Source: Oculina patagonica (taxonomy: Eukaryota). Taken from it: a DNA stretch of 64,000 bases. The stretch is from contig NC_135761.1 of the NCBI RefSeq assembly GCF_052425735.1, positions 29,822,001 through 29,886,000 on the forward strand, written 5' to 3'. Made by a program: the position numbers and the translations under genes. Shown in pieces: positions 1 through 43,546 of this stretch; position 1 is the first letter of the stretch, and each line of letters begins with the position of its first letter. Below the pieces are notes generated by a model. It saw only the letters and a program-made list of their open reading frames with translations, was not told the origin of the DNA and did not search any database.

Positions 1-1449
1 ACAAAGCATAACTGTGATGAAGTCTTAATTACTAAATTTATTTTAGTAATTCCGTTTTTACACTCCAAAAAAGATATCAAATGCTCAAGAAGTGTCTAGC
101 GGCCTTAAATTTACTCGTTGTATTTTCAACTCTCTTCTCATTGAAAAACGAGAAACGCTATTCAAAAAAGTTTGTATCTTATAACATACCACCTGTTGAG
201 GAGTAAAAAAACGAACGCGACTCACGATGTAAAGTCTATTGGTCCAACAAGATCTCCAATGAGCAACTACACAAGAATAAACGCCACTCGCTGTCTTGCG
301 GAGTCATTTAACGAGTTTTGAGTCTGAAAATCCAATAAACGTTCATCTTTCCTATCTTACACCACGATGAACAATAAACGCATCTTAAATGATATTGTCA
401 TGAATTAAAATTGCAGATACAAAACAACATGAGAGCTCTGAGGGATATTTGCAAAAGTTTAGGAGAAATCTGTCGTCGGGTTTTTAAAAATATGTTTATA
501 TCTCAAGAGATTTTACTCCGACTGAAAAACGAATGTCATTTTCTTTAAATTCGAACATTTTTCATTCAGGACGCAAAAATGCGAAGAAATCGGTGAACTA
601 TTACCTGTCAAAAGGCGCGACTCAAAAACCATTACGTAAATAAAAAGGTTTGGGCCACTTTAAAGATATAAAAATCTTTTAAAAGCATTAAAACTAATCC
701 TAAATAAAACTAAACTCTAAAAAATAAAATTTACAAATAAAAATGCTTATTTAACATACTTTTAAAAGTATTTAAGGACGGGGCACTTTTAATACAGAGC
801 GGGTAATGAGTGAAAACATATTGTTCCGTAAAGAAATAAGGTGATTGCTACACTAGAATTGAGAGAAAAAACTCACCGTACTCGTGTACGAGAAAACGAC
901 GATTTATCTGTCTCGCGAGCCAAGCCGTAAATAAAAAGCTCAAACTGTGCGCCCGCCAATTACGCGTATAATTATGCGCAGTTAGGATGCAATACTAATG
1001 AATGACCTTCCGAAGGCATCTGGTCCAGGAAAATGTGACATGCATAAAACTCAAGCGTTGACAGAGAAAGCGCTCAAACCAGCTTATAAAGGCGTCAAAC
1101 CCAAGAGGAAAGGAAAAGTTGAAACCCATTTATATTATTATATCATTATATCTCATATTATATTATTATATCTCTCAGATAGTACGCGCGCAGTGATTGG
1201 TTAATTTTGCGGGCCGTACGAGCCAACTGCAAACTGTTTTCTAAAGCCAATAAAAAAATCGCCGTCTGTTTGCTTTCGACGCGCTTCATTCAAATGTAGC
1301 TACTTGCCCCGCGAGTGACTTGAAATGTTTTCTTCTCTCCAGAGTGAGAGATATAATAAATATCTTATTAACCTCGTTTTTCCTGTCGATTTATGGCGCG
1401 CTAGCGAGCTTGGGCCATTAATCGACATGGCAAATTAAAACTGACTTAC

Positions 1450-4400
1450 CATCCTTCATTTTACCAGCAGCCATGTCAGTAATTTCTCTTTGTTTCGGCT
1501 TCCTTTGTCCCCGTGTCGCTCTAAAGAATAGGTGGAAAAAAATATAGCATTCTGTTTTAAATGAAAATTGTTTTCGCCATAATTAATAAACCATCTTTGT
1601 TTTGATCTCTCTTTGGATAAGTTCAGTGTTTCATTTTTAGAACAATAGGCTAGTGTTTAAGATTGTCTAAAAATGTTTAACTGGTGTTGTAAACAATTCC
1701 CACCGGAGCCCTTACTCTCAATCACCCCGGTTATAGTTAAGTTATGGGAACGAGGCGACTCCGAAGGTGAGAGAGAGCGAGAGCTCCAATACGGCAAGTA
1801 CAGAGGTCATCGCTGCGGGGAGGTGGGTGGGTCGCCAATGCTTCAGTCCTCCAGCACTTCACGAAAAGACAGAATACACGTGTACTGAGAAGCTATATAT
1901 ATACGTGTACATAGTCAGCGGCATGGCTTGCAGTTGCCAAAGTAACTGGGCACGTGGAATGGGAAATTAGGGTATTTGTTCGCGCGGGCCCCGGTGAGAA
2001 TAGTAAACAATTCCCACCGGAGCCCTTACTCTCAATCACCCCGGTTATAGTTAAGTTATGGGAACGAGGCGACTCCTACGGTACCCGCTCACGTAAGCCC
2101 CAAGCTAAGAACAGCCAACCTCGTTCCGATGCTCTCTTTCTTTTTGCCTTCTTTGTTAAGTGGGTGATTTCTCGGTACATTTTCTTAAACTTGAAAGAAA
2201 ACAAGAGTCTTCCTCCCAAAACTCAGAAAGCGTGTAAGCATTTACAATAACATAATAACGGCAAGACACTAGAAAAACATAGCAAAATATGTCACTAAAA
2301 CGAAACTAAAGGAAACAGCAACAAAAAAGCAAGCAAATGGGCATTTCTAACTGAGTGCTGGGGCCCGCCATGCGGGGTTTTCCCCCTACCAAACGCAATA
2401 TAAGCTACCAAAAGATTAAAGCTCGAAAAATACCGCAACCTCGAGATCAAAACCGAAGTGAGCTCCCCGGAGTCAACCAGGACCACGAAAATAGTATATA
2501 AACGGTGTCTAAAAGATAACATATAACGACTTGGAAGGGGAAAAACCAACCACACGGCGAGCCCGGAAATACCCCGTCTAGGACAGAGTGCAAGGTTTAA
2601 GATAACCCCTTTCGGGACAAGCCGACGCGGCGGTTAATCTCGCCTCCAGATACAACGATAAGAAGTGATCTTTTTGTATTTTTCCAGTTCATTTTTCCTC
2701 TTTTTTAGTTCTCTTTTCTTGTAACTCATCTTGAGTTGAGAACTTGAGTCTTTTTGTTGATCTCTTCATTTCTTTTCTACTTTTTTTTTTTTTTTTTTTT
2801 TTTACCTTCTCATTTCTTTTTCTTACTTCTTCTTTCTCTTATTTTTATCTCTTCATCTCTTTTCTTTTTTTTTTATTTTTTTTATTTTTTTCCTTTTCCT
2901 CTTTTCTTTTTCTTACTTCTTCTTTCTCGTATCTTTTTTATCTTTTCATCTCTTTTCTTTTTTCTTTTCTTCTCTCCTTTTCTTTTTCTGACTTCTTCTT
3001 TTTCTCATTTTTTTTAACTCTTCATCTCTTTTCTTTTTCCTTTTTTAACTTCTTCTTTTCCATCTCTTAATTTCCATTTTTTTTCTTTTTTGTACATTTC
3101 TCCCATGTTTAAGCTTCTCCTTATTCCTCCTCTTCCCGTTTTACGCTTTTTATTTTGTCTGTTCCCTAAATAATGTAATTAAACAATAACACAAGAAAAG
3201 ACAAACAATACCGACAGCTAACGAAGGGACAATAGGAAAGTAGAACAAAAGGTGAGATCGCAACGCAACCAAAAAGGTGTGACAAACTAGTTGAAGAGGT
3301 AAACAACAAGCAATGAAATATAAAATACGAGAAACCACGCCAGAAATAAACTAAATACTGAAATACCATGCAAAAATACCGATAAATAAAAATATGTAGA
3401 ACAAATACCAAAGAAAACACTAAGGGGGGATGAATGAAAACACGTGGCGTGAGACAACGCGACGAAAACTAAAGGCCATGAAACGAAATATAGGGAGAAA
3501 AAACCGAGTAATGAATAAAACCTAAAAAACAAACAAACAGACAATAAAACCAGATCGGATAAGTAGAACCCAGCTAAAAATACAGAAAACAGGTAAAGGG
3601 AAAAAAACGAAAAAGCGAGGGAAGGGCCGCGAATGAGACAAATACACCATAACTCGGGACGCGAAGGTAGCCGCTTCACAAACACCGCAAACAACACAAT
3701 GCAAAATAAGTAGAATAGGCTAAAACCGTATAACAAACTAAACCTGGTCGAGGAACGGAAGACTAACATGCGAGCGAAGACCCAGATAACAGACCTCGGA
3801 CTCTTCCCTGTAGGAATAGCTAGAGCGCTAGCGGGTGGTGTATTTGCAGTTGGCACGCTTGAAATAGAGAAGCAGCGGCGAAGTGAGGATAAACATGTTG
3901 AACGTATAAACGAGTCAGACGAGTAGTAGCCAAAACTCCAGGATAAGAGAACCAGGACTTGTGTAATGGGCAGACGGAGGGCGCAGCGATGACGCTAGAG
4001 TAAACGAGGAGCCGATGCAAAAGTACGCCAGCACTTCACGAAAAGACAGAATACACGTGTACTGAGAAGCTATATATATACGTGTACATAGTCAGCGGCA
4101 TGGCTTGCAGTTGCCAAAGTAACTGGGCACGTGGAATGGGAAATTAGGGTATTTGTTCGCGCGGGCCCCGGTGAGAATAGTTGCCGGGGATTCATCGACA
4201 ACTTTATAATGATCTGTAAAGCCCCGTTTCAACTAGCAACTTTAGCTTCGTTGTTTGTAATTTTAATTTCGAAGCGCAAGGGGTCTGTTGAAGTGACGGG
4301 AGGTAATTCAGAGATATTTTAACCTGAATTTCAGACCTCTTTCTCTGGTCACCTGCTCCCAAGAAGAGCAGATCTTCTCGGGAGCAGGCGACTAGAGAGA

Positions 4401-7400
4401 GACGTCTGAAATTCAGGCTAGCTTGTTATACGGTTTAGATATTTTGTGATGTGTTGTATTCAGACTGTTTTCGTCTAAAAACACTTGCGTAAGCCTAATA
4501 ATTCAAGAAAAGTGGTTGTTTTCGATTAAGACAGTTCGAAAAATCATAAAATACCAGGCATTGGAGTTCTGACATCGCAGTTCTAGCTTCGTTTTTTGGA
4601 AGAAGTCTCGACATCTCTAATGACGCCTATCAGCGTGGAAAATGTAAATCTCAAAAAAGAGGCATGTTTTCCTTGACGACTGAGGCATTTTCTTCCCTTA
4701 TAAATAGGGAAAATTTGCCCGACATACTGCACTTTTCAGGCTTTGAAAAAATGTCTGATTCTCTGGAGATATTTGTTTAAAGCTCTGGAGTTAAACTTTA
4801 GGGTTATGTCAGTACCAGAAACTGGTTCCTGTGTTTTATTCTTATATCATCAACTGTTTTGTCAATACTGGTCATGCATCAGAATTCTTTTTGTTTCTTA
4901 GAGATGTCGAGCATGGATGTTCTTTATCGTACTGGCGATAGAGCTGCTTGATAACCATTTGTGTCTTTTTAAACTCAATAGAATTGAATCAAGACTATCT
5001 TTATAGCTGCAGACGATATTACTGCTTTTAAAAGATGAAACTTCCCCTAGTAATGTATCTCGTCTTCTAAACGACTTCAATTAAAAGCCTACTCAGCCCT
5101 TCAAATGAACTCTTTTCAAATAAAGCATGTGGTTGTTGAATTAAATCACCGTTGCTCTACCGACAGAGGTTACGGGACCGGACAAGAGCAGGTCATCTCA
5201 ATTTCTTGGGTAGGTTAGAGCACGCTAAATATTAATTACCCAAGAGTTGATTTTCTACTTTCCAATTTCACGCTTGCTGCTCGTGTTCCTACAGCATTAC
5301 CAAACCTCCGCTCGCGTTTCTTTGACTCGATAGAAAACGGAAAATGTTTTCCATTCCTTACTTGCCCCCCCAAAAAATTGTCAAGAAAAAATCTGGTTTT
5401 GAAAGGGCTGAGGTATTTTTCATGTTAAAATTTATCGAGCGGGAGGTTATCTCCTCACCACTCTTAGGGATTTTCAAGTGCGTTGCGGTCACTTGAAATA
5501 TTTTTTCACAAGCACAACACCACAAGCTTCTTTTCGTTATCCACATACAAACATGATTGAATGATAGTTGTCAAGAAATTTGTTTAAACCATAAACGATA
5601 CGACCTAGTGGCTTTCGGGGAAATGTGTAAGCTATATATCTATTTGCATTCTGAGACCACGTGCATGCACTAAAGCGTTAAATGAGATCAACAATGAGCT
5701 GTGATCATTAAATATCACAAGGAAAAGATCTTCCCATCATTCCATAAGGTCGCATCGTTTGCAGTTTATTTTCTGACAAAGTTCCTTCATTCAGGTAGAA
5801 ATAAGTTTGCTTTGCCCTTTACCTTTCTTCAAGTACCAGAGGATAACACACCTCCCGAGCATCTTTGTTCTTTTTCAGAACTAGGTTAGTAAAAGAAAGG
5901 TTGTCCTTTAGCCTCTCGGAGAGAGCACGCGTACCATCAATACCAATGTAGTTCTCGCTCACATCCAGATAAGTCAAAGAAGTGTTGACTTTGAAGACCT
6001 CGGAAAGAGAACGCGCACCATCTTCACCAATGTAGTTCTTGCTTACATCCAGATTAGTCAAAGAAGGGTTGCCTTTTAGCCCCTCGGAGATAGAACGCGC
6101 CCCATCATCACCAATGTAGTTCTTGATCACATTCAGATTAGTCAAAATAGTGTTGACCTTTAAGACCTCGGAGAGAGAACGCGCACCATCATCACCAATG
6201 TAGTTCTTGCTCACATTAAGATTCGTCAAAGAAGGGTTGCCTTTTAACGCCTCGAAGAGAGAACGCGCACCCTCATCACCAATGTAGTTCTTGCTGACAT
6301 CCAAATTCGTCAAAGAAGGGTTGACTTTTAACGCCTCAAAGAGAGAACGCGCACCATCATCACCAATGTAGTTTTTGCTCACATCCAGATTTCTCAAAGA
6401 AGTGTTGACCTTTAGCGCCTCGGAGAGAGAACGCGCTCCACCATAACCAATGTCGTTCTTGCTGACACCGAGCTTAGTCAAAGAAGTGTTGACCTTTAAC
6501 GCCTCGGAGAGAGAACACGCACCACTACAACGAATGTCGTTCTTGCTGACATCCAGCTTAGTCAAAGAGGGGTTGACCTTTAACGCGTCGGTGAGAGAAC
6601 ACGCACCACCACAACCAATGTCGTTCTTGCTGACATCCAGCACAGTCAAAGAAATGTTGAACTTTAACGCCTCGGAGAGAGAACGCGCACCACCACAACG
6701 AATGTTGTTCTTGCTGACATCCAGCTTAGTCAAAGAAGTGTTGACCTTTAACGCCTCGGAGAGAGAACACGCACCACTACAACGAATGTCGTTCTTGCTG
6801 ACATCCAGCTTAGTCAAAGAGGGGTTGACCTTTAACACCTCGGAGAGAGAATGCGCACCACCATCACCAATGTCGTTGTTGCTGACATCCAGCTCAGTCA
6901 AAGTAGTGTTGATTTTTAATGACTCGGAGAGAGAACGCGCACCAGCATCACCAACGTTTTTGCCGCTCAAATCTAAATAGGTTAAGGTGGTATTGATCTT
7001 AAAAGCCTCGTAAAAAGAATAGGCATCGACAGCGTCAATGTCCAAAGTTGGATTAAAAGCTGCAAGGGAAAAGAACAGTTATTGACAACTGTTTACCGTA
7101 TTTCCTTTTATAAGAGCCGGGGTGATCATTTTATTTTTCACCAAGAGAGGGCGGTTATTCGAGGAAAGGCAACTAATTGATCGGAAGGGGGGTTCATTCA
7201 AATATCGCTTATCTCATTTAATCATTACTACAACAAAATTCGAATCTGATTGGTTGTTTTAAAACACGCTCTATTTTTTTCACCAAATTGGAGCACGGGT
7301 AGCTTCAGTGTGTAATAACAGTGTCTACTGCATGCGCGCTCTTTATTTGGTTCTTTATTGAGACTGAACACTCCTTTAATAAAGATAAAATGTTCGTTAT

Positions 7401-10400
7401 GTCACGAGCATGGGACAAAGAAAAAACCTAAGTCCCCGATGGGAATCAAACCTATGGCCTCCCAGACACCGCTTAGGTGCTCTAATCAGTAAGCTACGAG
7501 AGACTTGTGGTGAGCTGGAACATTGATTAGGTTCATACGTGACAAACATTAAAAACTGCATACTGCTAGGATCAGCAAAGTCAAAAGCATCGGTCGTCAG
7601 ATTTTGTTGATCAGTCGTATAGTAATAGTCCGAATTGGACTCTACTTGGTCATAATACCAAATGGTTGTCTATTCTGAGTGCAATGCAATATAGAGGTGT
7701 CAAATAGTAAATGCGAGACTTTGCGCGACGGCGAGACTGATATCTTTTCTGTGAGCCCTAGACCTTTTTAGCCTTGCAAAAGAAATTCAGACTTCGAAAA
7801 GGCGCCAAAGAAAAATTCGAGACGACGATACCCCTGAAATTTGGCTAAAATTATGCGAGAAACGCATTTTTTGAATGACCATTCACCACCCCTCAATATT
7901 TTGGAACTTTATAAAATGATATTTTGGCGATATTTTGGGTACTTAAAAGAGTAGAGCAAAAGATGATTTTGGTATCGACAATAATGGCGGTAATGGTAAT
8001 TGATTTGTCCTTATGAACATTATCATTTAACAAAGAAATATCTTTACCATCCAAAATCAGTGTTTCACTTTGACTTTCTCTTCCTTCCGTTTGAGTCCAG
8101 GAATCCACAGGAAATTTGATCTGTGTATCCTCCGTGGGAGCAGTTGGAATCTGAGTTTGGTCGGTAGCCTGGGTCTCCATCTCTTTAGTCCAAATTTCTT
8201 TGGTAGATTGAGTCTGAGTTTCCTCTTTACGTAAGTTCGCACTTTCGTCAATGCCTTGGATGTGGATTTCTTCAGAAGATGGAATCTGAGTTTCTGCAAT
8301 AGTTTGGTTCTCTATGCCTTCAACAGTCAGTGTCCGAGTTTGCTGAAGAGAGGGAGTGAAAGTACTTCCTTCAGCCAGGGTCTCACATTCGTCAGCTGGT
8401 TGGATCTGGGTTTCCTCAGCAGATAGGATTGCAGTTTCCCGTGTAGTCAGGGTCTCGTTTCTGTCAGTAACCCGAGCCTGGGTTTCTGCTGAAGTTAGAG
8501 TCTCACTTTCGGCAGCAGCTTGGGTCTTAGTTTCCTCAATTGATGGCATCACAGTTTCCTGTGTAGTCAGGGTTTGACGTTTGTCAGTTTGCCGAGTCTG
8601 AGTTTCCTCAGGTGGTTGTATCTGCGTTTTCTCTGAGGCAAGGGTCCTACATTTGTCAGTATCCTGGGTCTGGGTTTCGGCAGAAGATTGTATCAAAGTA
8701 CCCTCAGTAGTCAGGATCGTAATTCCTTCAGAAGCGGTAGCCATGGTTGAGCCATCAGTGTTTTCTAACGAATTTGCAACAGGAAAGAGAGTGTTACTTT
8801 TACGTTGGATGAATCCAACTGTAAACAGCATTCTCTGCCTTTGAACTACTGTAATTTTCATTATTTTTTGATGGCCATTGAAAACAAAATAATTACACTG
8901 TTTTCCTCCTCATTGACCAGAAGGCCTGAAAAGTGAAACCTTTGATTATCTTTTTGAAATTGGCTTGATACCAGCTTAGTCATGCCTCAGGGCTCTCAAC
9001 TCAATGCAAGGGATTGAGTCATCGCAACCCGTTCGCTTCGAATGGACAAATTTTGTCAAAACAGACAAAACTTCGATGGTGCCGTTATCCTGCCTATCTG
9101 ATTAATGTTGTATTTAATTTTCCCCAGGAACAATTAATTTGCATTTTGTAACGCGGATTCACCAATTGTTCGATAAAATTTACTGTGGTCTCAGGTCAAC
9201 ATCACCAAAAGAGAATAAATATGAAGAGGGATATCATCAATTGTGTTTTAATATATTCGATGTTTTTATGATGATAAAGGCAAAGAGCCAGTTAGAAGGG
9301 GCGACACAAAGTGAAACAAGGAAACCGGTCGGCGTGACGGAAGTTTGTAAGGATGGCGTATCTGGGAAATTACTCTTTTCGTACTAGTTGCAAAACCATT
9401 TAAAATCGCGGTCTGTGTTTAGGCACAAAGTTTGTAGTTTCAAATTTAATGAAAATGGTGAAAGAAAAAAAAAAGAAACTAGGCCAACAACCCAAACGTG
9501 ATATTTAAATGTCACACCAAAGCAAAAATTGGATTCTGGGATTATCAGTTTGGTCAACTTCCAGTGATTGCTTCCGGGCTTCCGACTGCATTTTTTTGTC
9601 CTTTAAGCGACCAATTGAAAAAAGAAACAAACTTTTTTATTATCCCAGAGTTCGTCCCGGCGACGAAGAACCCAAGACTGAAGAGCCGATGGACTCTGGG
9701 TTTGCGATTGAAACCTTGTCCGCCGGATGGGACCTGCGCCGAAGGCTTTACTTCAAAACATATCATATCAAGGTAGTTTGGGGTAAAATAGAGTATAAAC
9801 ATATTAGTCTCATAACCATAAAAAATGTTATTTTCAGCTTACTTGGCTTGTTCAAGAGAAACTCTTTGCATGCCAAGTAATCTTCTTCTAGAATAGTTGT
9901 TGTTAAATCTACAGATTCCACCTGAAATTTCTTCTTTATATCATCTGTCACAAGGCGTTTCTCAGTTATTGCATCAAGCCGACCAGAGCGATAGTCTTCC
10001 CAAAGGCGTTCAAGACTTTCCAGATTGTGGCACTCCACTGCAATTCTTAAACTATTCTCGTTTCCTTCTCTTGGTGTTGAGTTATGGATTATTTTCAGAT
10101 GCCGAATGTACTGAGGTAATTCCTCAACATCAGTTGTTTTTTCCTCCAAAATGTCCCCAGACATCAGTTTTGGTCTTTCGTCCTTTTCTTCTTCTGCCCA
10201 ACATTCTCCTTGAGTGTTTGTTAGGTTGCGTCCGTCTACGAATTTTTCAATGAGTTAGGTACATGAAACAAAAGCAAAATACTGTTATAGGTTTGACTGT
10301 AGGATCTCAAATTAAAGTCATCGTGAATTATTATTAATAAAATCAAGGCCGGCCAAGTTTCACAGTTTCTCCCCTCATGGCTCGACATCTATTCGCATAC

Positions 10401-13400
10401 AAAAGGTGAACTGCGTTAACGAAACAGATTCTGAATTCAACGATATCTCATTGCTGGTTAATTTTTACCATTGTTTATATCTCTTTGTGGTGTGTTTGTA
10501 TTTCCTACCTTTGTAAGTGAATGGACATGGTCTTGCAATTGCCTCATTTCAGTTATGATTCGTCTGTAACGTTTTACTTTCTTTTCCCGATAATTTAAGT
10601 CCGTACTGCGCAATCTCGGCTGCAATGTTTATGTGAGCCCACACGAAGGGAATGTTTACAAGCAAAACTAAAAATTCCGCGACAAACTTACCTTTTTCTT
10701 CATTATTAGCTCATCGGAACTTCTTGAACGAAACGAACTGTAATGGCGGACTAAAAAACGTCATGTATGCTGTCACCGAAGTGTAACGTTTCAACGAATT
10801 CAAAACAACAAAAAAAAAAGTTCACTATTGTCTTTGTTTTACCCGATGAATGATTTGTTTCACGGTGTTTAAAAACTTTACAACGTACTTGCGATATGCA
10901 TCAAGGAGGCGCAGCCAAGTTGACGATTGAAAACAAAGCGAGTGGTCTTATTTTAAGGCAATGACGTCATACATCGCCTTATGTAGGCAGGCCATGTGGA
11001 GATATGTTACGATGTGATGCGCGATTTCTCTATGAATAAAACCGAAGAGCACTGGGTTCTCTTCTTCATTGCCTCTGCATGCTTTGCATGCCGTGTATTT
11101 TTACTAGACAACTCAAAGAATTGCTTCCGGCAATGCCCAAAATGTTGGTGTTTTTTAAGCCAAATCACCACGACTTGTTTTCCCTTTGAACAGAATGGCA
11201 GTGCGTACGCGATGGTGGCCTATTAGCGAAGTAAATAACAGCGAGTAACCAACAGATTTGCGGTTTTCAGAGTAACAGAACACGACAAGTATCTACTAAC
11301 TTGTTGCAAATACAATTTTAAAGACTCTCTATCTTTCTCCTTCCACTCATCTTTCAATTTTCCTTAAAAACTGAAGCATTAACAAGTCTGCAGTCAGTAT
11401 TTACCGGTATCGTTACGGATTTATTCGTGAACTGATTCGTTCTTATCCTTTACTAACTGTGAAAAGTTATCACTTACAATTTACCGCAAGCTGGACAGTC
11501 ATCGGCTCAGGTTTTTCGGTGGTCTGGGTCTGAGTTTCATCAGCAGCTTGAGACTGGTTTTGTGGCAACAATTCATCATCATTTACTGTTGAGTCGTAAT
11601 TTACTCCTAAATAAATATAGTTTGGGAGAAAACGTGTTATATGATGTTAGCAATTGCATTTGTCCAATAACCTCCTTTGTTTTCATACTGATTTTTTCGA
11701 ACGCATAACCAGTAATAGCAATGCGTTGAACTCAAATTATTTGTCGTTGACTTGGTTTTGGTTGTTAAACAAGCGCTTGTTGTTTTATGACTTAATGTGT
11801 CTAACATAATTTTAAAATTGAAGTTGCCTAACATTGAATTAATTGTGAGCTCTTAGTTGCTGATAACGTTTAAGAACTAAAATCATGATATCAAATATAT
11901 TCAGATAACCAGTACCCAAAGCTGTTGATTGACGACTCACTTGAAATATCCATTAGGAACAGTTTGCAAGCCAAGTAGTCTTCTTCCAAAATAATAGTTT
12001 TCAACATCACGGATTCCACATCAAACCTCGTCTTAATATCATCTGTTAAAAGACATTCCTCGGCAACTGCATTTAGGTTTCCAGAACGGTAGTCTTCCCA
12101 CAGGCGTTCAAGAATTTCCAAGGTGCTGCACTCGACTATTATCCGTAAACTCCCTTCGCTTGCCTCTCTTATTATTAAGTCGAGAACTCCTTTCAAATAG
12201 TAATGGAGGCAGAGAGGAATGTTCTCAGACGGAATTTGTGCTGCAGTTGTCTTAAGAAATTGTTTTGTCATCTCAGACATTATAATTCGCTTGGCTTCTT
12301 CTTGTTGCATTGGATCTCTGCTTTTCATCTTTTGAAATATAACGGTGTTTATTTTGATTTCCATGGGCACAGTACCTTAAAGAAAATCAAAGCATAAAAA
12401 TTTGCTCTGGTATTTATATACAGGAAGAAAATCCATTATTTGCACGAACCTAAAACTGCTTTAAATTCAACGAACATCTTCAGTTGTCAGTAAATTCTAC
12501 AAGTGACATTTAAATTTATGGTATGCTAATGTTACAGTGCTAATTGAAATAGTTAAGAAATAATAGAAACTGTCAAAATTTCGATAAACAAAAGAGCGCT
12601 TTAACGAAAAGTAACATGTGCAGTATGCATGTACCAGAAATTTTTAAGTTAACTAATTTATCGCATGAATAAAAATTAAATATTCTACATTTCCAGTTTC
12701 CTAATAAATTGGTCTTTAAAATGTCAAAGTATTCCTCAAATGCTGCAAGTGAGTAGAAGAGATGTTTATACGAACCATGTACTCTGAAGGTACTGTACCT
12801 GAAGAGTAGTCAGTCAAAACGTTTATTTCCTGCGTCGGTATTGTTCTTCCTGTCGAGCTCTGACAAGCTGCAGAAGCATCTGACAAAATAAAACATGACA
12901 GGTTACTTGTAAGTGTAAAAACATTTCCTTTCATCCGGCACCTGTGTCTGCACATGTATTCGTACCTCAAGTGTTTAAGACAAATGGAGGTTGGTACCCG
13001 GACCTTGGTCAGTCGAATAAACAAGGACCGAATAAACAAGGACCTAACGTGACTGGATCACAATTGTCTTTGGGTCAGTTCACGATTTTTAAGGTCCTGC
13101 GTACTCCACCGTTACAATAACTTCAATTAACAAAACTTGTCATACTGATATATATATTTTTTAAATCATACTATAATTGATTGTGTGGTGGTAAGACAAC
13201 TATTATGCAAGCAAACTTTCTGCACCAAGGTGTTCTGTTACGAGAGTTTTCCAATAGCCGAAAAACAGACGAGAGTACTTCAAGGTCTGTTATTTGAAAG
13301 GCTCTGGAAAGGTATTGCTCATAAGAAGACAAGAAGCGGTAAAAAGTAAAAATAGATGTAGTTAGTGGATAGCACTTCTATGAAACAAAAACAACTTCTA

Positions 13401-15532
13401 CTGAAAAAAATATCATACCATGAGCCAGGCTGACCATCTTATCAATGAGAGATTTAGTTTGCCTCTCCCAACTATACTCTTCCCTGTAAAACGTACGCAG
13501 CGATTTAGACTCCTGAAGTCGCTTTCTTCTTTCTTTGCCCGAGATGTGCTTGATTGATTTGGCCCATACTTCGGCTTCATCAGAATCAACCACAAATGAA
13601 GAACCAAATGACACTTTACTTAGAGCTTCTCCAAATCCAGAGTTTCCACTAACAAGGATGGGTAGACCAGCTGATAAGGCTTCAAGACCTGTCAAACCAA
13701 ATGCCTCTGTTCTCGAAGGCATTAATGCAAGATCGACTTCGCAAAGCAAGTTTTTTAAACTTTCCCGGCTTTGTAAAAAGCTTCGTACAGTTAGGCGTTG
13801 AGCAGCGATGCCACACTCGAGCAAACGATTTTTTACCTCGTCTTGCTTTCCATTAGGTGCACCGACGAAAACAAGATGGGTGCCATCTAACATAGCAACA
13901 GCTTTGGCTGCAATGTCAAACCCTTTCAGTTCAAAATCTTCTTTATCTCCACGCCCAAAAACAAGGACTTTGAACTTTTTCCTTTCATCATCAACCTGCT
14001 TGACGTCGGAAAACTCAGCAAAAAGTCCAGGAGTAAATTCAAAGACTATTTGATCTTTCTTACACCCGCGAAGATAAGAGCGAAAAGCGTCACTCAATTT
14101 GGGTCCAACTGTTACCACAAAGTCAGCCATTTCACAAAGTTCGACTTCAGTTTCATGTTTTTCCTCATTAACAGAAACTGGATTAGAATATGTCTTATAC
14201 ATTCCAAGTTCCTCAGGGGCTGTATGAACAACCTGAACCCATTTACAATTGTGAGACTCCCTTATTACTTGTGCTTGATGTCCGAGCTTCACACCATGAC
14301 CAACAACTACGTCAATTTGCAAATCATCTGGTGGGAAGCTCAGCCATTCAAGCTCATCGTAGCCAGGTCGCCTTTTTGCCTTGACAAGATCAATCCGGTG
14401 ACTAAGAGCAGCTTTTTGGTCTTCGTCGTTGCATTGTGGGACAAAAATAGTGACATGTACGTCAGGGTCTTTTGCCACGTTTATGGCTAACTCTCTGTTT
14501 ACGGTGGAAAGTCCTCCTTTACTTGATCCCCATTCTGATGCCAGGAAGGTAACTCTTAATTTCCTTGACGATGTGTCAGGACCACTACTCTCTTGATGTT
14601 CTTCTACACTGGTCATAAGAGGACAGCTCGAGGATTCTGATTCCTGAAATAAATCATGCAAACTTGTAACATCCAAACAACGTTACGGTCTCGTTTCCTA
14701 ATGGACGTAAAGAATTCAAATAGCTGTATTACAAAGATAAGATCCTGATCGCATGAGCTCTTATCAGAGTATACCTTCCATGTTTAACTGTACATGCAAT
14801 ATCTGATTAACATGTGTTTAAGGGTTCAAACATCAAACGTCTCATTTACAGTTTTATGCATAAGACAAGCGTTTTAAATGTTACTTTCTCGAGGACCCTC
14901 AGGAGAATTTGACTGAAGAACGCAAGAAAAGACTTGTTCAAAGGCGTACCCGAAAGCACCTTTAGCTTTTTAAATGCTCTCCAGCAATTGACCAAGTGCG
15001 TCCATAGCTCGATAGACGCACAGCAGCTTGAAGTGTAAGCAAGAATCAATTTTAATCGCCAATTTAAACCAAAATTCTCTTGATAAGGCTTCTGTTTCAC
15101 TGTCCGTATGTTGATGCTTCGTGGGGCTAGAAAAATTACACTGATAGTAATGTTGGGAAGAGCTTTTCTGTCGTTCCTTATTTTTAAAACAACATAGGTT
15201 ATTTTTGCCCATTAAGCGAACAAAACATATCTGCTTAGTGGTGATAAAGTTTGCATATGGTACACGTCAATTTATGGAGCTCGGGAGTGTGGTTGCGTAC
15301 TTGCGCTATTAAGGATTCACTGGCTGTGTTATAACGCTTTTTTGATACCTTAGTTAACGTGTTTATTAGGCCTCTTTCAACTTGAAGGTAGCAATAAAAT
15401 ACTTTCTGTAATACCCGAATTAAGTGATCTAGCGAATTCTTTGTGATTGCATGGGTTGACCCACAACATCATGAGTCCAGTGTCCCATAATTTTAAAAGG
15501 TTAACAATAAATACCTTTGTTTGCAAGGACAT
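1450..15532 (-). CDS. Multi-exon NLR-like immune protein, copy 1 (GT4 glycosyltransferase - 2x TRADD-N-like - T/E/Q octapeptide repeats - RI-like LRR; no NACHT); 3' end probably continues left of 1450
   Basis: Phase-compatible GT-AG exons read on the minus strand: 15532-15515 (MSLQTK), 14643-13419 (GT4), 12879-12799, 12375-11941 (TRADD-N-like 1), 11606-11478, 10235-9843 (TRADD-N-like 2), 8764-8048 (octapeptide repeats), 7059-5823 (LRR), 1520-1450. No in-frame stop across about 1435 codons. Every exon has a counterpart of the same phase in the paralog at 32.6-52.8 kb. Confidence 0.8.
1689..4181 (-). mobile_element. Non-autonomous split-direct-repeat element (Ngaro/PAT-like tyrosine-recombinase retrotransposon derivative)
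   Basis: 74-bp repeat at 1689-1762 and 2003-2076; 154-bp repeat at 1851-2004 and 4028-4181. Minus-strand order is A1-interior-B1A2-spacer-B2. No TSD; a GT dinucleotide is shared by both ends and the internal junction. Confidence 0.75.
2668..3160. repeat. Polypyrimidine (T/C) low-complexity tract with internal duplication
   Basis: Almost only T and C; the block ttcttttttcttacttcttctttctc...tcatctcttttc recurs near 2813 and 2903. Confidence 0.85.
4320..4420. mobile_element. Small hairpin MITE with TA(A/G)CCTG...CAGGCTA ends
   Basis: About 47-bp imperfect inverted arms with a short loop; no TSD seen. Confidence 0.6.
5823..7059 (-). CDS. Exon encoding about 13.5 ribonuclease-inhibitor-type 28-aa LRRs (NLRC3-like), copy 1
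   Basis: 84-bp tandem units encoding SLTxLDVSKNxIGxxGARSLSEALKVNT. Acceptor ttgcag borders 7059. AG|gtaaag donor at the apparent stop codon. Confidence 0.92.
7398..7587 (-). mobile_element. tRNA-derived SINE-like repeat (degenerate)
   Basis: Reverse complement of the spacer plus tRNA-like arm seen at 37930-38106. Confidence 0.65.
8048..8764 (-). CDS. Exon encoding Thr/Glu/Gln-rich degenerate 8-aa repeat region, copy 1
   Basis: ORF 7893..8861; acceptor cgttag borders 8764 and donor G|gtaaag borders 8048. Octapeptide register xEETQ(I/T)Qx. Homologous exon at 44777-45430. Confidence 0.8.
9843..10235 (-). CDS. Exon encoding TRADD-N-like domain 2, copy 1
   Basis: ENSLRIAVECHNLESLERLWEDYRSGRLD...ILEEDYLACKEFL, a clear paralog of the 11941-12375 exon. 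Phase 1-1 splice sites. Confidence 0.7.
11941..12375 (-). CDS. Exon encoding TRADD-N-like domain 1, copy 1
   Basis: Motif EGSLRIIVECSTLEILERLWEDYRSGNLN...ILEEDYLACKLFL resembles metazoan TRADD-like N-terminal domains (recognised from the motif, not searched). A 435-bp exon of the same length lies at 48105-48539. Confidence 0.7.
13419..14643 (-). CDS. Exon encoding GT-B fold glycosyltransferase family 4 (Glycos_transf_1, MshA-like) domain, copy 1
   Basis: ORF 13378..14676 contains EWGSSKGGLST, VVHT, FGR...KGFD and the GT4 ExFG...E signature PSRTEAFGLTGLEALSAGLP. Acceptor tttcag borders 14643 and donor G|gtatga borders 13419. Confidence 0.92.
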
Positions 15533-15630
15533 CACTGGAAGCGTGGAATTTGTTTTGATCCTTTGCAGGTCATACAGTTACTAAAATGATAAAAAAAAAT
15601 TAATTACCAATCCATGTTTAACATAATTTC

Positions 15631-15857
15631 AGGCCCCACATACGAGGGGACTAGTTGCCGGGACCGATCGCTTTGGTTTTTAGTCCTTGCGACCAGTCCC
15701 ACGATTTCAAACCCGTTTGAATTCGTGGGACTAGTCTCCGGAACTAACATTCGGTCGCTACGACTAGATTTCTTGACGAAAATGGGAAGGGACTTGGTCC
15801 TCGGGACGACCCTCGGGACTAGTCGCAGAGACTGGTCCCCTCGTGTGTACCTGCCTT
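15631..15857. mobile_element. MITE with imperfect TIRs and internal gggactagt motifs
   Basis: catacgaggggactagt near the left end pairs with actggtcccctcgtgtg near the right end; absent from the paralogous intron. Confidence 0.5.
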
Positions 15858-16032
15858 AATAGTGTCTCCAACCAGTTTAATACCGCACTGACTACGAAAA
15901 TTTTTAATAGTTCAAGATTTAATTCATTTTTTAATTTTATTATTAGAGTTTAAGTCTACGCACGTGCATATGTGCGTATATTGTAGCTACGCCGCAGACT
16001 CTATGAGGTTGTTTTGATTTACAAACTCTCTC

Positions 16033-32760: not shown

Positions 32761-34200
32761 ATAGTTTATTCTATAATGTGTTCAATTTCAACAACGTATT
32801 GTGTGGGGAGTGGGATATATCCTTAAATTTTAGTTTACAATACATGAAGTGAAATAAAATGTAAAATGTAAAATATGTACACTAGCTATATATCAAAACA
32901 AAATAGAAAGAAATAAAAAGAAAAAAGGAAAGAAATATGAAAAAATTTAATTAAGAACTCGCTGAGAGGCTTTGTTTTCAGAGTTTTCTTACAATTTGCA
33001 TGACTCTCGCATAGTTTTAAGTCTTTGTCTAAAGAGTTCCATAGCTTGACTATTCTGTAATAAAAAAAGACCTTCGGCCAGCAGTGATTTTGAACAGGGG
33101 AATATTCAGTTGTTGTGAATTTCTTGTGGTTCTGCTTGATATTTGTTGCCTTTTGACAAATTGTGAAGTCAGATAGGTCGGGGCGCAGCCCGTCATGCAC
33201 TTAAAAGCGAAAACAGCGTCTCGGAGGTAAAGCTGTTTTTTTTTTTTTTTTTACGGGAAGCCACCTCAAATTCTTGAGTGATGGAGTTATATGCTCAAAT
33301 TTATATGTACCACTATAAATTACCGAGCAGCGAAGTTCTGAACGAGTTGAAGTTTTTGCACATTACAGGCAGTGGTGCTGGACCATACAGTAGAACAATA
33401 GTACAACTTACTGAAAACGAGCGCGTTGATGATAGTCACTAGTAGGTCGGAGTTGAATGCGTGCTTTGCCCGATTAATTTGAGCTAATTTACCCATACAG
33501 GATGAAACTGTCGCTAAAATGTGGTTTTCAAATGTCAGAGTGGGGTCGAATGTTACACCAAGATCTTTGATGGACTCTGACGGCAAGAGTTCCTTTCTGA
33601 GCAGCGAAAGCTTGAAATCAGATAGTCTACGGATCATCGGTCGGCTGCCGATGATCATGAACTTTGTCTTTTCAGGGTTGAGCAGAAGACAATTATCTAA
33701 ACACCAGTTACGGATTACATGTAAATCTTTTTGGATAGTGTCCTTTGCTTTGTCAGCATCACCAACTTTGAAAGACAAAAGAAGTTTGGTTTCATCCACG
33801 TAGCATTCGGTTGAACAACTTTCGCTGATTGCTGGAAGCCCCGAGTACGCTGCGTTGAAAGACGCCACAAGAAACGGATAGCGTCTGATAGCGTCGAGTT
33901 TATGCGAACAACTTGAGATCTTTGAGACAGATAGCTAGAAAACCGTGTTAACGCAGATGAGGAGAGGCCAATGTTCTTAAGTTTCTTTATTAAAAATTTC
34001 ATGCTTGATACTGTCGAAGGCCTTGCTCGTGTCTTGGTACACTACTGCTGTAACTTTAGTTTGATCAATCGCTCGTAAGATTGCGTCTGTAGAGGATATT
34101 AATGAAGTTTTGGTTGAATGCCACTTCTTGTTTCCGCTTTGATTAGATGCAAGTCTTTGTTTTTCAGTCAAATATAGTGTGAGCTGATCAAGTGTAATTT
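32761..34200 (-). mobile_element. Degenerate non-LTR retrotransposon fragment (CR1/L2-group reverse transcriptase)
   Basis: Frameshifted ORFs with HSTKTSL, DTSKAFDSI, YVDE (YADD site), LNPEKTK, KDLGVTFD, LQLVQNFAAR and KLWNSL. Lies in the last intron of gene copy 2. Confidence 0.88.
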
Positions 34201-37630: not shown

Positions 37631-37795
37631 TAACTCGGGGTCGTGTGATTTGCTATCCTTGTTACAGCTACCGTATTTGTTTGTGTCTATCATTGGAATA
37701 CCTGCTTGAATAGAAAACATCGGCGGCAAAAGAGGTTCTTTTTCCTGGAGATCAAATAGCAACAAAAAGTAGTAATGAAGTGTTCAACATGACAC

Positions 37796-38106
37796 GAGCA
37801 TGGGACAAAGAAAAACTCTGAGTCCCCGACGGGAATCGAACCCATGGCCTCCCAGATACCGGTTGAGCGCTCTAACCAACTGAGTTACGAGAGACCTGAT
37901 GTGAGCTGGGCCATTTATTAACTTGACGATTTCGACATTGCTGATCCTAGCAGTATGCATGACGCGTGTCACATATCAACCTAGTAAATGGCCCAACTCA
38001 CAAGGCGTCTCTCGTAGCTCAGTTGGTTAGAGCGCCCAACCGGTATCTGGGAGGCCATGGGTTCGAGTCCCGTCGGGGACTCAGATTTTTTCTTCGCCCC
38101 ATGCTC
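37796..38106. mobile_element. Inverted (divergent) pair of tRNA-derived SINE heads
   Basis: Arm 37983-38106 has A box tagctcagttgg and B box ggttcgagtccc; arm 37796-37920 is its reverse complement. Confidence 0.75.
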
Positions 38107-39689
38107 ATCTTCATTATTTATTACCGAGCTTAAAATTTACCATCTTTATTATTTACTACAAAGAAGTATTAAAACACCGAAAAGTCCGAACTTAGCCGAT
38201 AGAGAGGTAATGGTTTAGATAATAATGTTTGTATAGCAGCAAAAGATAAACACAGGCAACGAAGGGTTTCATAAGTATCGTTTCTTTATTTGAGTTGTAG
38301 TACCCAAGATATTTCAAAGCACCGCAAATTATACTCGCCTAAACTCTCTGCAACGTTAATAAAATCGAATACCGAAAATTACGAGTGCAAAAAATCACAA
38401 ATTATTTGACCATTTCTTATCTGTACCTCTTCCTCTAGACTCGTTATTCCAAAGGGTATTGGTCTTGATATTTCTGGTCCTGTTGAACAGTTGAGAAGAA
38501 TGGCAATTAAATTTTGAGAATTAAACCTCACTTGTCCTCAGTTATGTTTCATTGACTTTGTTGAATGTTATCAAGGAAGCGCCTGGACAGCGGCAAAAAA
38601 GGAAGGGAAAAAAAGAAGTACATCTTGTTTCCAAGCTGGTGATGGTGTTTTGTGATGGTGTTTTCACACTAAGCCGTCAATATTCTTGTACTATAATTGC
38701 ATTTCTAGTTTTCTACTTGGCACTTTACATTCAGCTTATCATCGCACGACTGTTTTCAGCACACATGGGACAAGAATGCTTTTGTTTTCTTGTGTTTAAG
38801 CCTGGTTTCGTCTGCCGGCCGGCGATAAATACAACAAAGTAAAATGGATGTCGGAGCTCACTTTTTCATCCTTATTCCCCTCTCCTATCATGCACGTGGA
38901 TGAATCTTCTCTTTTTTTGTATCTTTTTTGTTGGGTAGCCTACACTCAATTGCCAAATAAAAAACATACTTACCGAGTCTTTTCCATGCATATTTCGTTC
39001 CACTCGGGCTAGCATCCACGTCAGCAATTTTTCTTTTTCCCGGTTTAATGAGTCTTGATGTAGTTCTAAAAAATTGGTGAGAAAAAAAGGTTGAGATCTT
39101 CGTATCTTTAGCTTTAATTTATTAATCATATTTCTATGGGAGATCAGCTCATCAACTATGCTATGTAAATGGCCAATTGGCCTTTTGCCATTTGGGATTT
39201 CAAATTATTTTGTGTTCATTTGAAATATTTGTTTCACGTACACCATTACACAAGCTTTTAGCTTAAAAAAAAACAAACTAAATGCAAATAAGGCCAAGTA
39301 AAAACAAACAAACAAATGTTTCTCGTCCGGATGTCTATAAAAAAAAGAAAGCGCGCGGGCGCATTTTTTTGTTATTTGATATTTCCTCAATGGTCATATT
39401 CTCCAGAAGCGAACTTGCAAAATAAATCCTGACCTCTCCAGTACGGACCTAGCCAGCCGATGCTTTAAAGTTTTGGTCTGAGTTCGTATTAACGCAGTAA
39501 AAAGCCATGTCTTACAGAATTTTCTTTGTACTTAATTGAGGAGTAACGCCTGTTGGTTTTTGTTCGTTCCAACTTTCCCAATAACAAATATTAAAAAAAA
39601 GAGAAGCGGCCCCAAAAAATGAAGCGGGCGGGGACTAGAAACATTTGTGTTTTTTTTTTACTTGGCCTAAGGTTGAGCTTTACGTTTAC

Positions 39690-41079
39690 CTTATTTTAAA
39701 AGTCCTGGAGATGGAACGTACTTTCACACCAGCGTTGTTCTCGCTCACATCTAGAACATTCAGTGTGGTGTTGTGCTGTAGAATCTTGGAAAGAGAATCT
39801 GCGCCGCGTTCGCCAATGTTGTTATTACTCACATCCAGATAAGTCAAAGTGGTGTTGTGTTTTAGAGCGCTGGAGAGGGAATCCGCACCACTTGGACCAA
39901 TGTTGTTCTTACTCATATCCAGATTAGTCAAAGTGGCGTTGTGTTTTAGAGCACTGGAGAGGGAATCCGCACCACTTGGACCAATGTTGTTCTGACTCAC
40001 ATCCAGATTAGTCAAAGTGGCGTTGTGTTTTAGAGCACTGAAGAGAGAACCCGCACCACTTGGACCAATGTTGTTCTGACTCACATCCAGATTAGTCAAA
40101 GTGGCGTTGTGTTTTAGAGCGCTGGAGAGAGAAATCGCACCATATGGACCAATGTTGTTCTGACTCACATCCAGATTAGTCAAAGTGGTGTTGTCTTCTA
40201 GAGCGCTGAAGAGAAGATACGCACCACCTTCACCAATGTCGTTATTACTCACATTCAGATTAGTCAAAGTGGTGTTGTGTCTTAGAGCACTGGAGAGGGA
40301 ATCCGCACCATATGGACCAATGTTGTTATTACTCACATCCAGATTAGTCAAAGTGGTGTTGTGTTCTAGAGCGCTGAAGAGACGATACGCACCACCTTCA
40401 CCAATGTTGTTATTACTGACATCCAGATTTGTCAAAGTGGCGTTGTGTTCTAGAGCGCCGGAGAGAAAATCGGCACCATCTTTACCAATGTTGTTCTTAC
40501 TGACATCCAGATTTGTCAAAGTGGTGTTGTGTTCTAGAGCGCTGGAGAGAAAATGCGCACCATCTTCACCAATGTTGTTATTACTCACATTCAGATTAGT
40601 CAAAGTGGTGTTGTGTACTAGAGCACTGGAGAGAAAATCGGCACCACCTTCACCAATGTTGTTATTACTCACATTCAGATTAGTCAAAGTGGTGTTGTGT
40701 AAGAGAGCGCTGAAGAGAGAATCCGCACCACCTTCACCAATGTTGTTATTACTCACATTCAGATTAGTCAAAGTGGTGTTGTGTAAGAGAGCGCTGAAGA
40801 GAGAATCCGCACCACCTTCACCAATGTTGTTATTACTCACATTCAGATTAGTCAAAGTGGCGTTGTGTTTTAGAGCCTTGAAGATAAAATCTGCACCACG
40901 GCGACCAATGTTATTCTCGCTGACATCCAGATTAGTCAGCGTAGCGTTGACTTTTAGTACTTCGGAGAGAGAACGCGCACCATTTTCATCGATTTGTTTG
41001 CCTCTCAAATCTAAATAGGTTAAGGTGGTATTGATCTTAAAAGCCTCAATGTCCAAAGTTGGATTAAATGACTTTTCAG
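39690..41079 (-). CDS. Exon encoding about 15.5 RI-type 28-aa LRRs, copy 2
   Basis: 84-bp units encoding TLTNLDVSNNNIGxxGADSLSSALxHNT. Acceptor tcacag borders 41079; donor AG|gtaaac borders 39690. Confidence 0.88.
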
Positions 41080-41367
41080 CTGTGAGGAAAACCAAAAAAG
41101 AATAAAAGAAATGGTTGAGACCAATCAGATAATGCGTACGCTATAGTCACCATCATGCATTCCGCTTATTCATCATTTTTTTTTAAACAAAGCATAACTG
41201 CGACAAAGTCTTAATTAGTATATTTATTTTAGATTTTATTTTTTATTTTTATACTCCTTCGTTTTAGCCTCGATATAGATATATTGAATTCTCATTGTTA
41301 ATGGGGTACAAAACATTTTGCATCACAGAATGAAGGGCGAGAGGGTAAAAAAAGTTTGGTTGACAAC

Positions 41368-43546
41368 TGTATCACCCATAAATGTAATAAGAACCATTAA
41401 TGTAATACCAACCATAAATGTAACACAAATTGACCATAAATGTAATACTAACCATAAATGTAATAACTTTTAACCACAAATGTAATAAATTCACTAACCA
41501 TAAATGTAATGAAATTTGCCCATAAATGTAATAAACTGAACAACCATAAATGTAATAAGGCTTAACCATATAGGTAATAAACTGGCTACGACTTCCAAGT
41601 AAGGGGCCACAAACTTTTCGAGAAATTGACTGTTAGATTATACCCCTAAAGGCCTGGCTCAAGCTCTTTGTGACCCCTTGAAGCAACAAAAAATACCATT
41701 TCTTCGTGTGCAATCCTAAACGAGGACTCTACTATATTGCGGTATATATATCTACTCAGAATTACGAAATTGTACTCTCCGGTTTGAATGTTTATGTGCT
41801 TCCGCGTTTCCGTGCGTCCATGCCAAAGTTATTCAAAGGTCTGAATGGGGGTATCCCGATAACCACTTAATTTTTTGGCTCTGTAACATGAAACAGTTAA
41901 TTTTTAGGTATTTTAACACTAAAACATTCACGGTTACAGTAAATTTTATCCAGAAAGAAACAAAAACGGCTCCAAAAAGGTCAACATTATTTTGTTTAGC
42001 AGTTCTAGCCCGAGGCTGCTATCTCTGTTGATTATTCTGGCTCCAATAGGGAACATCCAACCCCCTCCCCCCTTCCCCACCCTACCACCTTGCGTAACAT
42101 TGACTTGAAGGCCGAATAACGTCGGCACGGACGCATGGACGCGCGGAAGCGGAGAGCACAATTTTGCAAATCCGGTAGGATGTATGGGAAAATATAAAAA
42201 ATAAAACAGGCGTATTCCTTGTAATGTGATGTTTGACTGAATTCGTCTTGACTCAAAGAGAACTGCAAGCTCCTTCAAATGGATGGAATGTCATAAACCC
42301 CCAGTACTTCAAACGCTCTGGTATATAGACTTTTTAATCATACAGTGGAACCCCGCTTTACGGACACCCGCTTAATACGGACACCCCGGTATTACGGACA
42401 GTTTCGTTGGTCCCGACGAAAACCTCATACATTTTCTCTTAAATTAACCCGCTTAATACGGACACCCGTTAATACGGACAACGGACACTTTTTCGAGTCC
42501 CGAGTGACAAACTGTCATACATTGTTTACCCCGCTTTACGGACACTGTTTATCTGTGCACTGAAAATTTTCATTGTCGCGATTATTTGGTAACTTGAAGA
42601 CATTGACCCTGGTCAAATAATGACAGAATTTGACAAGTTAAACGATTTTAATACAAAGAGTAGCTTAATAGCGTGATGCAAAGGTTTTGTCGAATCTTCA
42701 GTCCGCCTGGTTATGTCGCAAGCTAAAAGCTTCCGTGCAAAGTAAAGTTACCATCTTTTTTAACGAGTTTAGAGTTTTAGAACGGTTACGGTGAGAGTTT
42801 CAGTTACAAAGGAAACTTTTTAAAAAACGTTCGTTGCTGTTGAAATACGTTTTATTTCTTGTATATAGTTAAGCTGCGACATTTTCAAATAATTGACTGT
42901 TAAATAAATTATAGTAAAGTTTAGTTCGAGTGTCTAAATAGATCGTGTAAAAACTATTTATTTTAGTCAGTTTTCACAGTTTTCATTTTTTTTACATTAA
43001 CAGTACAATGAAACAACGTTTTATTGTCTTAAAAACGTTTGCCTTCGTCCATGTGTCGATAAAACATGTATCCGTTACTTTTTTCTGAGACCCCGCTTAA
43101 TACGGACACCCCGTTAATACGGACAATTTGGCCTGTCCCCTTGGTGTCCGTATTAACGGGGTTCCACTGTACTTTGGATACTTTCTAAATGTTCGCAGAC
43201 CATAATTATAGCTTCTTGGGTTTTGTTCTCTGGGTTAAAATACTAACTTGATGAACGAGTCCCGTGTCCTGAAGTAAGAAGTGCACAAAGAGAATGACAA
43301 GTTTGTGGCCCCTTATTTGGAAGTCGTAGCCAGTTTATTACATTTATGGTTAAGCCTTATTACATTTATGGTTGTTCAGTTTGTTACATTTATGGGCAAA
43401 TTTCATTACATTTATGGTTAGTGGATTTATTACATTTGTGGTTAAAAGTTATTACATTTATGGTTAGTATTACATTTATGGTCAATTTGTATTACATTAT
43501 GGTTGGTATTACATTTATGGTTTTTATTACATTTATGGGTGATACA
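41368..43546. mobile_element. 2179-bp non-autonomous DNA transposon with TGT...ACA termini, about 249-bp minisatellite-like TIRs and a 6-bp TSD
   Basis: TIRs 41368-41616 and 43299-43546 are built of ccataaatgtaata units. gacaac duplicated at 41362-41367 and 43547-43552. Confidence 0.85.
42343..43169. mobile_element. Tc1/mariner (pogo/Tigger-like) MITE nested in the 41368-43546 element
   Basis: TA|cagtggaacccc ... ggggttccactg|TA; repeated taatacggacac motifs. Confidence 0.85.

Follow-up and report, generated by a model that had tools for sequence, protein, structure and literature searches.

Proteins with a GT4 glycosyltransferase domain ahead of TRADD-N and leucine-rich repeats (LRRs) behind it are shared by cephalochordates, hemichordates and cnidarians, and the glycosyltransferase has been taken to be an effector recruited from the conflict systems of bacteria (Kaur, Iyer, Burroughs and Aravind, eLife 2021; PMC8195603). 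The table of that study gives a version with tandem TRADD-N domains in Stylophora pistillata, in both RefSeq and GenBank models, proteins with GT4, TRADD-N, STAND and LRRs in Acropora, and Orbicella LOC110059861 as GT4+TRADDN-DEDD2. In Acropora, proteins that combine glycos_transf_1 with LRRs often, but not always, carry NACHT (DNA Res 2025; PMC12314368). The gene considered here lies on the minus strand of a 64,000-nucleotide stretch of the genome of the coral Oculina patagonica (NCBI RefSeq assembly GCF_052425735.1, contig NC_135761.1, positions 29,822,001 to 29,886,000), hereafter the window, and has nine exons between positions 15532 and 1450. The domain order is GT4-conflict glycosyltransferase, TRADD-N, TRADD-N, a 238-residue octad repeat rich in Thr, Glu and Gln, and 13 RI-type LRRs.

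The locus corresponds to O. patagonica RefSeq LOC144652231 (isoforms X1–X5, 1839–2099 amino acids) and GenBank KAL9976647.1, ACROYT_G013969 (1829 amino acids), an uncharacterised protein with gene models from two independent pipelines (RefSeq and GenBank), both of which place the gene on the 64.4-Mb contig of GCA_052425735.1. It is an already annotated gene in a published architecture class, and not a new category. The novelty of layout implied by an earlier reading of the same DNA (the initial annotation) does not stand, as GT4-TRADD-N-LRR had been catalogued by Kaur et al. (2021), the tandem version for S. pistillata. The same architecture, which it had proposed to look for among cnidarian proteomes, occurs in those Stylophora models, as well as in several Oculina paralogs.

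It is likely, in our judgement, that this is one gene of a tandem cluster and of a cytosolic, innate-immunity type, in which a GT4 is followed by two TRADD-N domains, a disordered T/E/Q linker and RI-type LRRs with no STAND nucleoside triphosphatase (NTPase), and that it belongs to the class of Kaur et al. (2021) and originated by exon shuffling. Of the features of that class, an N-terminal conflict-type GT4 and, after it, two TRADD-N domains are found. The DEDD2-clade label for this gene (copy 1 below, a diverged copy 2 lying in the same window) is a putative one, transferred from Orbicella LOC110059861, the TRADD-N1 of which is 74% identical to that of copy 1.

Gene Structure

The window is eukaryotic DNA with a GC content of ~38–41% and no N runs, and between 15.5 and 5.8 kb it holds five long minus-strand open reading frames (ORFs). 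Exon junctions were defined by a GT (or GC) donor, an AG acceptor and exact translation to the annotated protein, which left a single solution for each of the eight junctions, all of them canonical GT-AG (Table 1). The nine phase-compatible exons proposed initially for 1450–15532 were reproduced exactly, including the 8048/7059 junction, and give residues 1–1435 of the annotated protein P0332 as an exact match; residues 7–1435 are common to six annotated O. patagonica proteins and are encoded without mismatch in the window. The joining of LRRs C-terminal to TRADD-N in a putative single polypeptide, without STAND, is made by both annotations and by canonical, in-frame junctions. Exons 3–7 all have phase 1-1, as is classic for domain exons that have been shuffled, and exons 8 and 9 taken as a unit likewise run from phase 1 to phase 1.

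The end of the gene, placed at 1450 by the initial annotation, had to be moved. Annotated models splice onward from exon 9, and beyond 1450 each of the six annotated proteins has a second block of LRRs (about residues 1437–1790), which lies outside the window and resembles the copy 2 LRR exon, with ~72% identity. The cassette of LRR and linker exons (phase 1 to 1) appears tandemly duplicated in the annotated protein of copy 1, and behind each LRR exon comes a short linker exon whose encoded peptide is similar (..K.EITD....MKD), at 1450–1520 in copy 1 and 38972–39067 in copy 2. RefSeq isoform X1 adds two Death domains, which GenBank has as a separate gene (ACROYT_G013962); no Death-domain exons are present in the window or in the paralogous locus L003, and X1 joins distant exons of this kind left of window position 1, either as an over-joined model or by long-range splicing within the cluster. 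The RefSeq range of LOC144652231 is 134.6 kb, extending over two nested GT4+TRADD-N paralogs (874 and 892 amino acids, modelled without LRRs) and HVSL/USB1-like genes, and since it crosses other genes, some isoforms may be over-joined at their far 3′ end. A related RefSeq model, LOC144652233, consists of TRADD-N, LRR and Death without GT4.

Domain Content

The GT4 exon matches Pfam PF20706 (GT4-conflict) at 1.3e-89, over profile positions 2–385 of 385. The catalytic motif had been described as intact, and EX7E (TEAFGLTGLEA), the phosphate-binding GRxxxKG (FGRGDKEDFELKG; GRGD..KG) and the N-terminal glycine loop KGGLST, with its GGLST, are all kept and align with those of solved GT4 enzymes (6kih, 2iv7; sucrose-phosphate-synthase-like, WaaG, MshA). 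By these sequence criteria the domain would be a CAZy GT4 retaining glycosyltransferase of GT-B fold, with transferase activity predicted.

TRADD-like_N (PF20694) matches twice, in agreement with the two TRADD-N-like domains first proposed. Residues 415–1000 (586 residues) were modelled with AlphaFold2 from a 30-sequence alignment, giving a predicted local distance difference test score (pLDDT) of 80–96 for TRADD-N1 and 70–93 for TRADD-N2. For TRADD-N1, the best match among solved folds in VIA-align was the N-terminal domain of human TRADD, 1f3v_A (Z 7.0, root-mean-square deviation 3.1 Å, 107 residues), which was top-ranked with a modest score and is consistent with Pfam. Foldseek on the 586-residue model returned weak ferredoxin-like matches only, with TRADD-N coming first after VIA-align re-ranking. 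The model therefore lends modest support to a TRADD-N alpha/beta sandwich fold in domain 1. Human TRADD has this domain (1f3v, TRAF2-binding) at its N-terminus and a Death domain at its C-terminus, and the likeness extends to the predicted fold and to the pairing of TRADD-N with Death in isoform X1; however, identity is only ~16%, the coral domain is in tandem and stands between an enzyme and LRRs, and binding of TRAF is only putative here.

The repeat exon (T 21%, E 14%, Q 11%) shows autocorrelation of residue identity of 0.165, 0.198 and 0.238 at lags of 8, 16 and 24 residues, compared with a background of ~0.08, so the octapeptide repeats originally reported are seen as peaks at these three spacings. 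This periodicity is confined to the protein level, as Tandem Repeats Finder (TRF) detected no tandem array in the DNA there. The region has no Pfam match, and a PDB sequence search with residues 415–1000 was empty bar one chance match. A folded beta-solenoid was rejected as an explanation of this exon, the AlphaFold2 pLDDT being <50 across the repeat region, with no secondary structure. In the LRR exon, which matches Pfam LRR_6, TRF found an 84-bp unit in 12.7 tandem copies of 86% identity, corresponding to 13 full 28-residue RI-type repeats, the number estimated at the outset.

Table 1. Positions of the exons of copy 1 and copy 2, and of intron 7, in the window.
Feature	Position	Strand	Details
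Exon 1, coding part (MSLQTK)	15532-15515	-	ATG 15532-15530; GT donor after 15515; 3′ phase 0
Exon 2, complete GT4-conflict (both Rossmann halves, EX7E)	14643-13419	-	P0332 residues 7-414 exact; 3′ phase 1
Exon 3, short linker	12879-12799	-	phase 1-1
Exon 4, TRADD-N domain 1	12375-11941	-	PF20694 5.4e-09; phase 1-1
Exon 5, short linker	11606-11478	-	phase 1-1
Exon 6, TRADD-N domain 2	10235-9843	-	PF20694 2.2e-06; phase 1-1
Exon 7, T/E/Q-rich octad (8/24-residue) repeats, predicted disordered	8764-8048	-	phase 1-1
Intron 7, between repeat and LRR exons	7060-8047	-	988 bp; no coding potential, no NTPase
Exon 8, N-cap and 13 RI-type 28-residue LRRs	7059-5823	-	LRR_6 6.8e-59; starts phase 1, ends phase 2
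Exon 9, short linker ending in GTAAGT donor	1520-1450	-	3′ phase 1; annotated models splice on leftward
Copy 2, GT4 N-terminal part	51906-51466	-	
Copy 2, GT4 C-terminal part	51359-50727	-	
Copy 2, short exon between GT4 and TRADD-N1	49988-49902	-	
Copy 2, TRADD-N1	48540-48106	-	
Copy 2, short exon between TRADD-N1 and TRADD-N2	46713-46603	-	
Copy 2, TRADD-N2	46131-45733	-	
Copy 2, repeats	45428-44778	-	
Copy 2, LRR	41080-39689	-	

Absence of a STAND NTPase

An NLR is marked by a central STAND NTPase (NACHT or NB-ARC with Walker A and B motifs), which is lacking here, although a C-terminal LRR sensor of the RI/NLRC3 type is present. Searches by tblastn with the NACHT regions of two GT4-NACHT-LRR relatives returned LRR exons only, in the window and in the paralogous locus. 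Pfam gave no NACHT, NB-ARC, AAA or nSTAND in 47 minus-strand ORF pieces of 5600–15700, in 62 pieces from the copy 2 intron, the paralog intron and positions 1–5822, or in the full-length annotated proteins. No in-frame Walker A was found, the regular expression yielding three artefacts, two of them out of frame in TRADD-N2 exons and one crossing the exon-9 donor, and no P-loop fold emerged from structural searches (Foldseek, VIA-align) of the model of residues 415–1000. The longest part not assigned to a domain is the 238-residue low-complexity repeat, predicted to be disordered; it has neither the length nor the complexity to conceal a NOD module, and no other long stretch is left for one. 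A cryptic NTPase was accordingly tried and rejected, by the Walker-A scan, tblastn, Pfam, the PDB sequence search and AlphaFold2 with Foldseek and VIA-align.

These results agree with the initial annotation, which had seen no NACHT or NB-ARC: motif, tblastn, Pfam and fold searches found none in exons, introns, copy 2 or a third paralog, and the intron before the LRR exon, said to be under 1 kb in copy 1, measures 988 bp and gives no NTPase signal. The domain search it had proposed, expecting GT4, TRADD-like N and LRR without NACHT, returned PF20706, TRADD-like_N twice and LRR_6, with no NACHT.

Paralogs, Copy 2 and Selection

Copy 2 (39689–51906, minus strand) is diverged, has the same exon order and lies within a segmental duplication reaching as far as 63.8 kb. 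Its GT4 exon is missing 50 bp that are present in copy 1 and L003, producing a frameshift near 51472. The earlier statement that two diverged paralogs share the layout stands for the exon order, with the correction that copy 2 is frameshifted in GT4. Because the deletion shifts the GT4 frame, GenBank splits copy 2 into ACROYT_G013972 (153 amino acids) and ACROYT_G013971 (1493 amino acids), the latter with an internal Met start, no N-terminal Rossmann half and a reverse-transcriptase fragment at its C-terminus. That end is probably a chimeric gene-model end; it coincides with a retroelement fragment carrying reverse transcriptase at 33491–33925 and 33320–33868 (both minus strand).

Intact paralogs are found elsewhere. 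In P0333 (ACROYT_G013983, locus L003) the exons follow in the same order, with one LRR exon only and a NACHT-free intron of 2.75 kb, and P0394 (ACROYT_G013999) and P0395 have the same layout as copy 1. The intron between repeat and LRR exons is contiguous in copy 1, in copy 2 (3.7 kb) and in L003.

Ratios of nonsynonymous to synonymous substitution rates (dN/dS; Nei-Gojobori, copy 1 against the L003 paralog) were 0.24 for GT4, 0.25 for TRADD-N1, 0.73 for TRADD-N2, 0.72 for the repeats and 0.60 for the LRR exon, the last from an alignment that is ambiguous owing to internal repeats. GT4 and TRADD-N1 are under purifying selection, and the enzyme head is constrained where the C-terminal parts evolve fast, as expected where a conserved effector is coupled to a sensor that diversifies. 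Together with the layout kept in P0333, P0394 and P0395, this purifying selection upholds the initial view that the gene is not a one-off case of decay.

Relation to Other GT4-Headed Proteins

Searching with the GT4 exon revealed a coral family of very large size and varied architecture, in which the partner domains include a second GT4, caspase, NACHT with LRRs, and ankyrin repeats. The Stylophora pistillata models have the same domain order and no STAND NTPase, at 1516–1560 amino acids compared with 1829–1883 for Oculina; they differ in coming from Pocilloporidae rather than Oculinidae, and in the Oculina models there is a second block of LRRs, joined in one isoform by two Death domains. This likeness rests on the table of Kaur et al. 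(2021), in which the octad-repeat linker is not itemised, and Stylophora LOC111341950 was not among the matches of two region-restricted protein searches. In Orbicella faveolata, the locus of LOC110059861, which of the Orbicella genes in that table is most similar to the one described here, keeps the exon order as far as an assembly gap, and RefSeq splits the region into two genes. The closest locus outside Oculina (L002, an ENA coral contig, 82% GT4 identity) carries a long interspersed nuclear element, with endonuclease and reverse transcriptase, at 12966–15975 in the intron between GT4 and TRADD-N.

Coral NLRs of GT4-NACHT-LRR layout (Oculina ACROYT_G012414/5 = P0378/P0382; Acropora millepora 'NLRC3-like' P0383; P0011) have a homologous GT4 head (60–68% identity) and a homologous RI-type LRR tail (45–53%), and these too form tandemly expanded immune-type clusters. 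Identity to the Oculina proteins on the same chromosome is 68% for GT4 and 48% for the LRRs, and to the Acropora 'NLRC3-like' protein 53% for the LRRs. In these NLRs the centre is a NACHT domain (PF05729), whereas here it consists of two TRADD-N domains and a disordered repeat, with no detectable NTPase. This degree of identity and the phase 1-1 exons are consistent with exons having been exchanged inside one superfamily, and the most likely origin of the family, as judged from sequence, would be exon shuffling within a coral GT4-X-LRR superfamily, with TRADD-N and repeat exons at the position of the NACHT exon. To bacterial and metabolic GT4 enzymes (the PF20706 conflict enzymes, WaaG, MshA) the coral domain is alike in its full-length PF20706 match and its EX7E and phosphate-binding motifs, but it is fused to animal adaptor and sensor domains.

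Alternative Explanations

Some observations weigh against a single receptor gene of the class of Kaur et al. (2021). The evidence for the joins consists of two annotation pipelines, homology and phase logic, the structural match of TRADD-N1 is modest at Z 7, and several gene models do not run through: Orbicella RefSeq splits the orthologous region into a GT4+TRADD-N1 gene of 587 amino acids and a downstream gene of 875, the two nested Oculina paralogs have no LRRs, and the 134.6-kb range covers other genes, with the 3′ end of some isoforms perhaps over-joined.

A bolder version of the same gene is unlikely, if worth stating: that it is a working, NTPase-free counterpart of an NLR, in which ligand bound by the LRRs directly frees or clusters the TRADD-N/GT4 head for a glycosylation output. 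The cluster might then also diversify itself by frame-neutral cassettes of LRR and linker and share distant Death exons by alternative or long-range splicing, and such sharing among GT4-TRADD-N 5′ modules is hinted at by the 134.6-kb RefSeq model over nested paralogs.

It is rather improbable that GT4-TRADD-N and the LRR exon or exons belong to separate transcripts and proteins, with the fusion an annotation artefact of a dense tandem cluster. The split Orbicella models, the nested paralogs modelled as GT4+TRADD-N only, the range of LOC144652231 over other genes, the X1 Death exons that form a separate GenBank gene and the GT4-less LOC144652233 would all be explained in this way. However, the two independent pipelines agree on the joins as far as residue 1764, every junction is canonical and in frame, and the LRR exon lacks a separate start codon context, beginning in phase 1 right after the AG. 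Additionally, P0333, P0394 and P0395 are joined likewise, and the RefSeq and GenBank models of Stylophora share the architecture. Short ORFs identical to O. patagonica, which were sought in the protein collection as transcript evidence, did not turn up.

Decay of a former GT4-(TRADD-N)-NACHT-LRR receptor, which would have lost its NACHT exon and be on the way to a pseudogene, is very unlikely. Proteins with GT4, TRADD-N, STAND and LRRs exist in Acropora and Montipora, and in copy 2 the GT4 is already frameshifted and the GenBank model closes with a fragment of reverse transcriptase, but copy 1 is open in nine of nine exons, the catalytic motifs of its GT4 are intact and dN/dS against an intact paralog is ~0.25 for GT4 and TRADD-N1. 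The NACHT-less layout is, moreover, kept in at least three further Oculina paralogs and in the Stylophora gene.

That a NACHT exon exists between repeat and LRR exons and is merely missing from the assembly can practically be dismissed, for although tandem clusters are hard to assemble and in the Orbicella counterpart a 4.9-kb gap falls at this very place, the window is free of N runs, copy 1, copy 2 and L003 each have an unbroken intron there without any NTPase signal, and the assembly is chromosome-scale (64.4-Mb contig).

Neighbouring Genes and Repeats

An HVSL/USB1-like gene (PF09749) at 18375–~25600 on the plus strand is divergent from LOC144652231 and lies ~2.8 kb upstream of it. Pieces of this gene are duplicated at 56038–57029, 61511–61838 and 63577–63819, and since it falls partly in the duplicated segment, the tandem unit carries both genes. 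Intron 7 contains a repeat element (7399–7586) related to copies at 37789–38106, an inverted repeat pair within which ARAGORN found a tRNA-Thr(GGT)-like sequence (38007–38082, plus strand); these repeats are likely to be a family of tRNA-derived short interspersed nuclear elements or miniature inverted-repeat transposable elements. The intron between exons 8 and 9 has direct repeats at 1954–2000 and 4131–4180 (plus strand), ~2.2 kb apart and with the same short ORF start (MEWEIRVFVRAGPGENS), and between them a long F/S/L low-complexity tract (2744–3070).

Proposed Mechanism and Significance

If the gene is an innate-immunity-type receptor as favoured here, its LRRs would bind a ligand derived from an invader or from damage, and the TRADD-N domains, with Death domains where present, would form assemblies or bring in partners, for example TRAF-like or death-fold proteins. 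The GT4 would act as the effector, glycosylating a target of the invader or of the host. Because there is no STAND module, activation would proceed by ligand-induced release or clustering and not by nucleotide exchange. The disordered, Thr-rich linker may serve as a flexible tether and, more speculatively, as a substrate of the GT4.

Corals possess huge, fast-shuffling families of intracellular immune-type genes, and we know of no GT4-headed member among them with a known substrate or trigger. What is new here is a member in a newly sequenced coral, the architecture itself being published and the gene annotated. The locus is a clean and contiguous example in which two TRADD-N domains and a disordered repeat stand at the NACHT position, all on phase 1-1 exons. 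With intact and broken paralogs side by side, it offers a convenient model for asking whether an LRR sensor can drive an enzyme effector without a nucleotide switch, and also for how receptors are built by exon shuffling.

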